The notes under the pieces: model-generated | Seen by the model: the letters and a program-made list of their open reading frames with translations, nothing else | What the model was told of the DNA's origin: nothing | Database searches by the model: none | Assembly: GCA_033442325.1 (NCBI GenBank) | Contig: JAWQFM010000036.1 | Coordinates: forward strand, 314,719-378,718 | Length of the DNA stretch: 64,000 nt | Origin: Salpingoeca rosetta | Lineage: Eukaryota > Protista > Choanoflagellata | Direction of reading: 5' to 3' | Made by a program: the position numbers and the translations under genes | In this document: positions 1,204 through 21,844 of the stretch, in pieces | Layout of the letters: every line of letters begins with the position of its first letter | How positions within the stretch are numbered: position 1 is the first letter of the stretch

Positions 1204-3262
1204 GATCGACCGTCGGCTGGATCGTGCACGCGGAAGCCGCCAAGGCGTCAGATACGTGCAGCAGGGGTTGTTCGCTTGCAGCGCCCTTGCGGTTGCAGGC
1301 CTTGTGACCGGGTATCTATATGAAACACAGTTTGCCTGTCCCAAGAGCCTGCCCGCAGGCGTGAGCAACGGGACACCGCCAGCACGCATCCCCGATCCGT
1401 TTACGCCCCTGCACAACATCCGCCTCATTCACACGGATTCACACGTGTTCACGTGCGTTCTCAGTGTCCCCGTAATTGGCGTTGCTCTTCTGCTGTCCTC
1501 CGTGCTAACACCGTGGAGAAATCGGTTACACAACGCTATTAAGCGGCTGGAGCACAGGAAGGAAGAACAAGAGGGCGTCTCAAGCCCTGCCAACAGCTTT
1601 GGGGGAGACAATGTCAACGTGCAGCTACCAACCAAACAAGACGACTCCAGAAGCCTTGCCACTGACGGCGCGTCGCCGTCTGGTGACTCCACAGAAACCA
1701 ACCGCGCTCGAAGCAAACTGCGGTGGCTGGTTTCTGGGCTGCTTTGGTTTGTGCGAACGCTGCTGTGGGTCGGCTACGAACGGCCAGACCCTCGTCGAGC
1801 AAGCAGGTCACAGTGGTTCTGCTACTTCGTTGGCGCAGGGGCAGCTTGCTTCTCCCTCGTGCTCTACGTGTACACACATGATGGCGAAGTTGCAGCCCGC
1901 TACGCCCAAGCCGTGGCATCGCCCTTCCTCCTGCTTGCCTTTGTCAATGTCTTGCACAGCATCCAATTGCACGTCGACACTCGCTACAAATACGGCTCTG
2001 AGAAACAGGTACAAGCGGTGATGGCAACGGTGACAGCAGTTGGCGGCGCTACGCTTCTGGCCCAGTTCTTCCTCTGGGCCTTCTTTGTGGCCTTTGCGTA
2101 TGCGACACTTCCCTGTCTTCCCCTGCGTGAAGGGGGCACATCCCGCCCCGACGTGGCCTATCTGTCGAAGCGCCTCTTTCTCCGCTACATTGGCTGCTTC
2201 ATCATGTCCTGCGAACTCCTGTTTGCCTACATGTGGTGGATTCTGGAGTTTGCTGCGGGAGGTGCCAGCGTTGTGCGCATGGTGCAGTTCCGCGGTGGCG
2301 CTCTGGCTATCGTCGTCAACGTACTCGTCGTTGTTGCCACCTTCGTTGGCGTGTCGACGTATGCGGGTGTCTTCTCCTCGCAAGAGAGCATCTTCTTTGT
2401 GAAGCAGCCTGCTCAGTACGTGACACCGAAGATCACTCTCACCCTCGCGTACATCTTCTTCGGCCTCTGGTTTCTTTGCTTCTCCCTCATGGGACTGAAG
2501 GACGTGTCTGCCAGGGTACAGAAGTACTTTGTACAGAACGAACAAAACGAAACCATCTGCATGCTTTACCGCAGCGAGGACGGGGAGCTCGCAACCTACA
2601 TTGCCAAGGAGATCAAGAACAAGAGCCCGCGCTTCTTGGGCCAGGCTAACAGTGTGGAGGTTGTCCAACATAATGTGGATCATGAGGCGTACCCCGCATG
2701 CGCCACACCTTCCACAGACTCTGATGAGCCCAGTGACGGCGACCTTCAACGGGCAGACCAGCTGAACAATACTCGCGTCCTTGTCGTCGTGATATCCTGT
2801 CACAACGAACCGCCTTTTGGCTCGGTCGGACGCATGCTAAATGACAACGACGACGCGGAAGCCAGAGCAAACAGCAATGACGGAGATGTCAACATGTTTC
2901 TGCTGCAGCTCATCATTGCTTATGAAATGGAGAAGCGCGATGACATCACCATCTACCCCATCTTCGACGCCCGAGATGGCAGCACACGAATTGCCTTCAA
3001 GAGTCCTGAGAACGATTTGCCTGACACAACACCGGAACCAACAGCGCAGGCAGCAGCCAATATCCTCAAGCGCTTGTATGGAAAAGAAGGCGCCAAGTTT
3101 GACGTGACTGTTGTTGAATTACTCAGAGAGTGGTCCCCCAGGAACCTCATGCACAGAATGCTTCAGCTGCAGGGCACTTTCATGCACAACCTTGGTGAGG
3201 TTACAGCCGCCAATACTGCAGCTGCAGGAGTGCTGAAAGCGTACGAAGAGTCGGCCATCTGA
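1204..3262 (+). CDS. Multi-pass (~8 TM) membrane protein with degenerate C-terminal TIR-like domain, copy 1. The 5' end abuts the LTR; the ORF is open from ATG 1007 inside the LTR.
   Basis: It shares motifs with three paralogs: CP loop, SH(V/I)(F/Y), SxxQW, Q(F/V/L)FLWxFxxx(F/Y)AYATLPCLP, FLL(Q/E)LIIA and IYPI. A candidate acceptor tccag|g lies at 1199-1203. Confidence 0.8.
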
Positions 3263-3678
3263 AGACATGACGAAGAAGGAGGAAGTGAGGAGGAAGCACG
3301 TGTGGGCATGGATTGAATGCGGTTTGCATCTCTTTCTTTCTTTCTTTCTTTCGTTCTTTCTGTCTTTCTTGCTTGGTTGCATGTGTGTGTGTGTGTGTGT
3401 GCGAGAGTCATGGTCGTTCATAACTTGCTTTGAATTGATTTGAACATCTTCCCTGGCATTTCTGTCTTGTGTCATTTCTGTGGATTTGGTGCCGTTCGCG
3501 TCCTTCATAGAACACGCAACAAAACAAAGTCACATCATGTCACATTACAACCAACTCAGAACATACGCACACACACATACGCACGCACACACACACACAC
3601 ACACACACACACACACACACACACACACACACCCCTTCACCACACACGCACACGCACACCCTCCCCTTCCGCTATTGG

Positions 3679-21200: not shown

Positions 21201-21844
21201 ACACCGACGCGGAGAACGACCACCCCCTGCTGCACACGGACCTGTACGTGCCGGTTCTGTCGTGGTGGCGGAAGAACGTGGACCCTGAGATCAGCTCCTC
21301 GACGGCGGCCCGGCCCGTGGGGTCATTGGCAGATGTGGCCGCGCGCACGGGCGGCGAACTCGATGGCGACGGTGGTGGCAGCAGCAGCGGTGCTACTCAC
21401 ATGTTCCTGCTCGAGCTGATCCTCGCCTTTGAGCTGCACCGCGCGCACAAGATCAAACGCATCTTTCCCATCCTCTCGGGCGGGCTGGCGGAGAACAAGC
21501 GCTTCTACCAAGATCTTAGGGAGAACATGGGCGAGCTCCCAGACAACCTACATGGACCGACGTGTGCAAGGGCACTGGAGCTGCTCAAGGTGTGGCAGCG
21601 CACAAAGCAGGTGAACCTCAAGCTCGGCGACAAGCCCCCGCCCCATTGGTCCGCCAAGACCATCACCACGCTTGTGCTGCTGTACCCGGCATTCAACATT
21701 CACGAGCACGGAAGCGCCCGCTTCGCAAACGACAAGTCCGTTGATGCCGTGTTGCTTGCATTTGAGCGTGCCACGAAGGAGAAGGCGAGCACAAAGTCAC
21801 TTTCAGCAACCCATGCACTCTTTGATGCGCTTTTCCTTCACTGA
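18294..21844 (+). CDS. Multi-pass (~8 TM) membrane protein with C-terminal TIR-like domain, copy 4; exons 18294-18595, 19005-19109, 19432-21844
   Basis: Two phase-2 GT-AG introns join in frame. Motifs include VQVFLWCFFVGFAYATLPCL, RFWGT, NVFVSS, LYVPVLSWW, FLLELILA and IFPILSGG. Confidence 0.85.

Follow-up and report, generated by a model that had tools for sequence, protein, structure and literature searches.

Based on comparative analyses of a 64,000-nucleotide (nt) stretch of the Salpingoeca rosetta genome (G000:C36:314719-378718, hereafter the window), we describe a five-gene tandem cluster of old, diverged paralogs, four of them located in the window (c1 to c4) and one about 14 kb upstream of it (c5). 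The encoded proteins combine a predicted membrane module of about eight transmembrane (TM) helices with a C-terminal domain of about 240 residues, which is a complete SARM1-like TIR domain. The subfamily to which this domain belongs extends across protists and is marked by an enlarged alpha-D region. At the level of sequence, the membrane module is an orphan, without a detectable relative or an assignable fold anywhere searched. We propose, with somewhat more confidence than doubt, that the proteins are membrane-resident TIR receptor-enzymes, in which the 8-TM module would tether the TIR domain and act as a sensor, and in which clustering would turn on cleavage of nicotinamide adenine dinucleotide (NAD+) by c3 and c5.

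Each of the four copies in the window forms a long uninterrupted frame at the positions given by the original prediction, and these positions match sensible gene models (Table 1). c1 to c4 align end to end with 24-29% identity and 56 invariant columns. In a six-frame search of the genome (55.4 Mb), a profile of the four copies recovered them at E = 0 to 1e-242, which places their similarity far beyond chance. The same search uncovered the fifth paralog, c5, and detected the membrane module nowhere else in the S. rosetta genome. Despite an identity of only about 25%, all five copies have kept 620-960 stop-free codons, pointing to long-term purifying selection. Annotated S. rosetta proteins are available for c1, c2 and c3 (identifiers in Table 1), labeled in UniProt only as 'Transmembrane protein' or 'uncharacterized', and c4 and c5 are missing from the protein collection.

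The copies share a common order of elements, namely TM1, a cysteine-containing loop, TM2, a low-complexity linker, an amphipathic helix, six further helices and the C-terminal domain. Eight membrane-length helices, and the amphipathic helix preceding TM3, emerge from a Kyte-Doolittle scan as well as from the secondary structure predicted by AlphaFold. Together with the end-to-end alignment, both bear out the shared layout of about eight TM segments that had been predicted. Loop 1 comprises 40-70 residues with one invariant cysteine, and the low-complexity linker between TM2 and TM3 spans 100-225 residues. In c3, TM1 is found at residues 32-50, the loop 1 cysteine is Cys57, TM2 covers residues 103-121, the linker extends to about residue 225, and TM3-8 occupy residues 264-505. 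The six-helix core represents the best-conserved part, with 28 invariant columns that include the motifs Q.FLW.F, AYA(T/S).PC and R(F/Y).G, all three already singled out in the original prediction. Invariant polar residues (Q, D, R, C and the E of WW.LE) are located inside or at the ends of the TM helices.

Regarding topology, basic segments occur in the N-terminal flank (c1 and c3), in the TM6-7 loop and in the stretch following TM8 (clearest in c4 and c5), and loop 1 of c1, c2 and c3 carries one to three N-x-S/T sequons each. In the arrangement we infer (N-in/C-in), the cytosolic side would comprise the N-terminus, the TIR domain and the long linker between TM2 and TM3, and the loops pointing outwards would be the AYATLPC loop and loop 1 with its cysteine and sequons.

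Compared to Pfam one by one, the C-terminal domains yield matches to TIR_2 (PF13676) of 25.2 bits for c5 (E 2.5e-5) and 19.5-22.3 bits for c3 (E 1.9e-4), and no match for c1, c2 and c4, the gathering cut-off of this family being 28 bits. Inserts cause the match to end at profile position 75-92 of 122, and hence Pfam alone misses the domain. A profile of the five TIR domains alone likewise retrieved nothing from the PDB. With a profile consisting of TM3-8 and the C-terminal domain, 1.84 billion representative proteins were searched exhaustively using HMMER. This returned 422 proteins, 3 of which are the S. rosetta paralogs themselves, leaving 419 protist proteins. Among the best 150 of the 422, the remaining matches cover only profile positions of about 275-515, i.e. 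the C-terminal domain as one 230-residue unit. Joined to the five paralogs, 36 of the matches from this search gave an alignment of 41 sequences, 27 of which match TIR_2 (best E 3.5e-14); the Pfam assignment put forward in the original prediction is in this sense borne out by the family, and not by any of the copies taken singly. Across the 41 sequences, conservation reaches at least 90% at ten positions: S-Y-R of beta-A, D and G in beta-B and around the BB loop, a proline in beta-C, the D, L and E of DNxLLE in helix C, and a proline in beta-D.

With this joint profile, the five copies are matched at E 1e-37 to 4e-61. Compared to the PDB, in turn, it selects the TIR domain of human SARM1 as best match (E 2.7e-9), followed by flax L6, AT1G72930, C. 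elegans TIR-1 and Roq1, the five of them falling between E 2.7e-9 and 1e-4. The AlphaFold model of c3 residues 515-765, computed on the 41-sequence alignment, reaches a predicted local distance difference test value (pLDDT) of 85.6 and a predicted template modeling score (pTM) of 0.85. It displays the full order of TIR elements and, as extras, an insert before helix C and the enlarged alpha-D region. In a Foldseek comparison of this model to the PDB, SARM1 ranks first (8d0g_B, E 4.7e-5, template modeling score (TM-score) by target 0.70), and the top 45 matches are TIR domains with a probability of 1.00 and TM-scores by target of 0.54-0.70. Further matches are the TIR domains of L7, RUN1, RPP1, Roq1, SNC1, RPS4, AbTir and SPARTA, and the neighbors in the ESM Atlas, selected by features as well as by structure, all belong to TIR_2 families. 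Joint profile and predicted fold thereby confirm the SARM1/TIR_2-type TIR domain that had been proposed from the c3 string FISY...VFLD...GEDW...VPIFS...FLLEL...VVPI, which is present as quoted.

We note that at least 40 more S. rosetta loci encode TIR domains of the same subfamily, most of them near-identical copies of the F2UPN6 type. Examples (L013 and L015-L019) are located at G000:C14:1676524, C13:1706003, C26:20826, C30:18974, C36:42551 and C28:853144. Many of these loci are no more than about 80 kb away from the start of a contig, a position that could reflect a multi-copy family of subtelomeric type.

Placing the joint profile on SARM1 aligns DnvLlE with DWVHKE, and the family glutamate comes to lie opposite the glutamate of the WVHKE motif, which we take to be the catalytic E642; the source for this catalytic residue is reportedly the work of Essuman and colleagues from 2017. 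All ten near-invariant residues, along with the LPD..S..T and QG segments, are retained in c3 (with Glu625 as the helix-C glutamate) and in c5. By comparison, c2 has kept the glutamate and lost the arginine of SYR, the D..G pair, DN and the beta-D proline, c4 has kept the glutamate and lost SYR, D..G and DN, and c1 has a glutamine in place of the glutamate. Of the NADase-type signature claimed for the copies in the window, the helix-C glutamate hence stands for c2, c3 and c4 (and for c5) and fails for c1, and the full signature stands for c3 (and for c5 outside the window), being degenerate in c1, c2 and c4.

A direct point of reference is available from the same species. An S. rosetta TIR domain has been reported to make cyclic ADP-ribose (cADPR) in E. 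coli, the catalytic glutamate being needed in all cases tested, and the construct listed in Table S4 of that study comprises residues 1034-1255 of F2UPN6 with Glu1118 (bioRxiv 10.64898/2026.04.20.719644). Counting along the printed sequence, Glu1118 falls in DNVLLEW. The F2UPN6 TIR exon was located on L015, and BLASTP aligns it to c3 and c5 Glu-to-Glu with 26-28% identity over the core; the F2UPN6 TIR is a member of the same subfamily as the cluster TIRs. Signature retention combined with the reported activity of the F2UPN6 TIR suggests that c3 and c5 are probably NAD+-cleaving TIRs and that c1, c2 and c4 probably are not. In the domain tree, c1, c2 and c4 group together (Shimodaira-Hasegawa-like approximate likelihood ratio test (SH-aLRT) 93) and c3 joins them (81). 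The terminal branches of c1 to c4 are two to three times the median length, and that of c5 is the shortest of the five, still above the median. A single origin of the five TIR domains appears compatible with this tree.

For the membrane module, the exhaustive search gave no match outside S. rosetta to profile positions 1-265, which represent the membrane part, among the best 150 of the 422 proteins. Nothing was retrieved when the TM alignment and c3 residues 231-514 served as queries in word-indexed searches, and a scan of metagenome contigs for the TM module matched 502 patterns, of which 0 were confirmed. Neither Pfam, at E up to 10, nor the PDB sequence profiles returned anything for the module, and the ESM Atlas features gave no usable match. 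AlphaFold, supplied with the five sequences, produced a model of the module with a pLDDT of 48.8 and a pTM of 0.38. Fold matches of this weak model, compared to all PDB representatives, reached at best a Z of 8.7 over unrelated helical bundles, which is too low for helical proteins, and were rejected; they included SPECT, TAS2R14, cytochrome oxidase and designed proteins. The structure search recommended by the original prediction, carried out with this model, thus gave only scattered helical bundles and no assignable fold. The absence of the module from relatives is weak evidence, because most choanoflagellates are represented by transcriptomes only and the genes are barely transcribed in culture.

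Hydrophobic segments are also present elsewhere in the subfamily. At least three are found in about 20 of the best 150 of the 422 matches, and other protist members contain 3-6 TM segments of unrelated sequence. The combination of a polytopic membrane part with a TIR domain is not unique to the S. rosetta proteins. The distinct architecture that had been claimed is accordingly retained for the module, for which the searches detected neither a named family nor a relative, and not for the combination as such. We also observed a recurrent protist order consisting of an N-terminal TIR domain of the same subfamily, a SAM-like region, 5-6 TM segments and a conserved C-terminal domain without Pfam match, as in P0021 (Guillardia theta GUITHDRAFT_113953), P0026-P0028, P0056, P0061, P0092 and P0145. 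A RelA/SpoT-like C-terminus had been guessed for these Guillardia-type proteins and was dropped, having no Pfam support.

In the mechanism we propose for the S. rosetta proteins, the polytopic module would tether a cytosolic SARM1-like TIR domain, would probably sense a cue and would most likely control TIR clustering. The clustered TIR domains of c3 and c5 would then most likely cleave NAD+ to ADP-ribose (ADPR) or cADPR, and the proteins would represent membrane-resident stress or immune receptor-enzymes. In this scheme c1, with its glutamine, and c2 and c4, in which the glutamate is kept and pocket residues are lost, would probably be either catalytically inactive partners or copies in decay. 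Enzymatic TIRs in general, including SARM1, the plant TIR-type nucleotide-binding leucine-rich repeat receptors (TNLs) and bacterial TIRs, are activated by induced self-association. Restraint of a TIR NADase by a membrane tether has a precedent in Dictyostelium TirC, which is held at the membrane by a hydrophobic N-terminal segment, the tether restraining its toxicity (PMC13142454). A further-reaching version of the mechanism appears doubtful to us. In it, a cADPR-forming TIR would be under the direct control of the orphan 8-TM module, itself a membrane sensor or channel of a new type, and hetero-oligomers would contain c1, c2 and c4 as their regulatory subunits.

Several observations weigh against membrane-resident receptor-enzymes. 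At the protein level, no copy attains Pfam's own TIR_2 cut-off, the catalytic signature is incomplete in three of the five copies (c1, c2 and c4), the TM5-6 loop, which is outside in the N-in/C-in model, is also K/R-rich, and the AlphaFold model of the membrane module is unusable. A link of the cluster to immunity would be drawn by analogy only. The homodimer prediction for the c3 TIR domain speaks neither for nor against self-association. At the gene level, c3 and the 5' part of c4 have almost no reads (depth at most 0.7) in RNA sequencing (RNA-seq) data from three S. rosetta runs, about a quarter of each of which was read for the region 14000-19999. c1 is located directly downstream of an open reading frame (ORF) for an integrase and chromodomain, with no obvious start codon of its own before TM1. 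In c5, a frame break inside an AGC microsatellite separates the part encoding TM1 and the Cys loop from the remainder of the gene.

The annotated gene PTSG_13156, in which the integrase ORF is spliced onto c1, looks like a chimeric gene model, and the break in c5 could be a frameshift or an assembly error. No long terminal repeat (LTR)-like direct repeats of at least 100 bases were found around the integrase ORF in the upstream 9.4 kb. The read depth and joints that appear at 14000-14400 stem from cross-mapping of RNA-seq reads on CA repeats. One contig-only data set contains 29% of the sampled words of c3 and 0 of those of c2, and two others contain about 9% of those of c2; transcription at a low level and under certain conditions would be in keeping with such a pattern, the data sets not being confirmed as RNA.

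Taken to the extreme, the gene-level observations would describe a silent, decaying, lineage-specific gene family without current function. The near-zero RNA-seq coverage, the annotated fusion of c1 to a retroelement ORF together with its glutamine at the Glu position, the frame break of c5 in the AGC repeat, the absence of c4 and c5 from the protein collection and the long TIR branches of c1 to c4 are all in line with such decay. We nevertheless regard it as decidedly improbable, as the five open frames at their low mutual identity imply purifying selection, as the TM core has preserved its invariant columns, and as the share of c3 words in one contig set, unconfirmed as RNA, suggests conditional transcription. 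Alternatively, the TIR domains may be non-enzymatic scaffolds that recruit other TIR proteins, as in Toll-like receptors (TLRs) and interleukin-1 receptors (IL-1Rs), with no NAD+ cleavage by the membrane proteins. Here, the state of c1, c2 and c4 is informative, which lack near-invariant pocket residues, yet have kept the fold elements and long open frames, and the strong expansion of the TIR subfamily in the genome would supply potential partners. Since c3 and c5 retain the complete signature including the glutamate, and since enzymatic activity has been reported for the F2UPN6 TIR, a paralog within this subfamily, we consider pure scaffolding unlikely.

The roles of the two parts could also be reversed, with the TIR domain sensing or regulating, for example through nucleotide binding or oligomerization, and the 8-TM module acting as pore or channel effector. 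Bacterial defense effectors with TM domains provide the model for such an arrangement. The TM core is conserved at least as well as the TIR domain (mean column identity 50% vs 40%), it contains invariant polar residues inside helices (Q121, E184, D152 and R163, alignment A7 numbering), and it has been kept in the copies whose TIR domain has degenerated. No likeness to any channel or pore family was detected by sequence or, using the weak TM model, by fold, and we hold this arrangement to be rather remote. Membrane-resident receptor-enzymes with probably catalytic c3 and c5 are the reading adopted here.

Table 1. Features of the cluster and of the adjoining integrase ORF. Positions refer to the window unless a contig or locus is named.
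Feature	Positions	Strand	Remarks
Ty3/gypsy-type integrase C-terminal end and chromodomain	69-965	+	Pfam Chromo 1.1e-11, SH3_Tf2-1 7e-10
c1 main exon	1205-3262	+	TM1, Cys loop, TM2, linker, TM3-8 (to ~2548); annotated PTSG_13156
c1 degenerate TIR	2549-3259	+	
c1 codon at catalytic-Glu position	2906-2908	+	reads Gln (FLLQL)
c2 main exon	11208-14111	-	8-TM module then TIR; PTSG_11225, P0002
c2 TIR	11211-12041	-	Glu codon 11649-11651
c2 first exon	14333-14410	-	26 acidic residues from start Met; CA-repeat intron spliced out
c3	15394-17691	+	single exon, 765 aa, identical to P0001; best-preserved copy in window
c3 TIR domain, residues 515-765	16936-17688	+	beta-A to alpha-E, enlarged alpha-D region
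c3 Glu625 (GAG)	17266-17268	+	in DNFLLEL, helix C; presumed catalytic
c4 probable first exon	18294-18596	+	ATG 18294, acidic N-terminus, GT donor near 18596; sequence reading only
c4 main exon	19433-21844	+	8-TM module then TIR
c4 TIR	21047-21841	+	Glu codon 21413-21415
c5	G000:C36:299108-301033 (L005:1474-3345)	- (on L005)	TM1 near L005:3500-3620; best-preserved TIR of family

The first exon of c2 was obtained by mapping the annotated protein P0002 back onto the window. For c4, GT- and CA-repeat introns and a possible second exon near 18957-19111 follow the first exon, again as read from the sequence. Long CA/GT microsatellites are located at 14120-14260, 15260-15370, 18610-18740 and 19200-19390, within introns or leaders at the 5' ends of c2, c3 and c4. 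Such microsatellites translate to Thr-His runs where they lie inside open frames, and RNA-seq reads cross-map to them. Between c1 and c2, an ORF at 3682-5085 on the minus strand matches DUF5074 and DUF6923 repeats (E 1e-9 and 4e-6), and Pfam gave no match for the remaining long ORFs in the stretches separating the copies (5109-6461, 7259-8569 and 9990-10808). At the far end of the window, 50120-64000 on the minus strand is occupied by one open frame of more than 4,600 codons that runs off the window end. With at least 37 cadherin repeats and FAT4- and CELSR-like matches, it looks like a giant choanoflagellate cadherin.

TIR domains are a shared currency of immune signaling in bacteria, plants and animals, and choanoflagellates serve as the reference point for the state before animal Toll-like receptors. 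S. rosetta is said, by Richter and colleagues in 2018, to be without canonical TLRs. The cluster indicates that it has predicted membrane-embedded TIR proteins of another build, polytopic and with a SARM1-type, probably enzymatic TIR domain. Domain-based surveys will miss these proteins because each copy scores below the Pfam cut-off. Membrane control of a TIR NADase is directly testable in this organism, given the genetic tractability of S. rosetta and the assay already reported for a sister TIR.

Among known systems, the TIR domains of the NAD+ hydrolases SARM1 and TIR-1 are closest, SARM1 being the best solved-structure match by profile and by fold alike. The motif order is shared, with FISYR, VF(I/L)D, the BB-loop glycine, the beta-C strand and the helix-C glutamate (DNxLLE vs DWVHKE). 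The S. rosetta copies differ in having no ARM or SAM matches (Pfam, E up to 1), in the 20-45 residue insert before helix C and the enlarged alpha-D region, and in that the 8-TM membrane module stands where SARM1 has its octameric SAM ring. F2UPN6 (1352 aa, TIR 1034-1255) comes from the same genome, with DNVLLE, the LPD..S..T segment of alpha-D and the C-terminal QG strand as common features; however, its N-terminal part is different and not of the 8-TM type, and it belongs to a family of many near-identical copies.

TLRs and IL-1Rs are, likewise, membrane proteins with a cytosolic C-terminal TIR domain. They are single-pass, with leucine-rich repeat (LRR) or immunoglobulin (Ig) ectodomains and clade-1 TIRs, whereas the S. 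rosetta copies have eight helices, outer loops of at most about 70 residues and a SARM1-like TIR, and no LRR or Ig domain was matched in them by Pfam. Dictyostelium TirC differs in its single N-terminal helix, without a polytopic module, and in a TIR domain recently derived from the bacterial TIR-STING lineage (PMC13142454). In Guillardia theta GUITHDRAFT_113953 and its marine-protist relatives, a TIR domain from the subfamily of the S. rosetta copies is joined to a polytopic membrane segment, but in reversed order, with the TIR domain N-terminal, and with a TM module unrelated to that of S. rosetta (hhalign probability 1%). Already known are therefore the TIR subfamily, of which one member has been assayed, and membrane-anchored TIRs as such, i.e. 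TLR, IL-1R, TirC and an Arabidopsis membrane-spanning TIR. New is an orphan 8-TM module placed N-terminal to such a TIR domain and expanded to a tandem array of five genes, in the lineage that is sister to animals.

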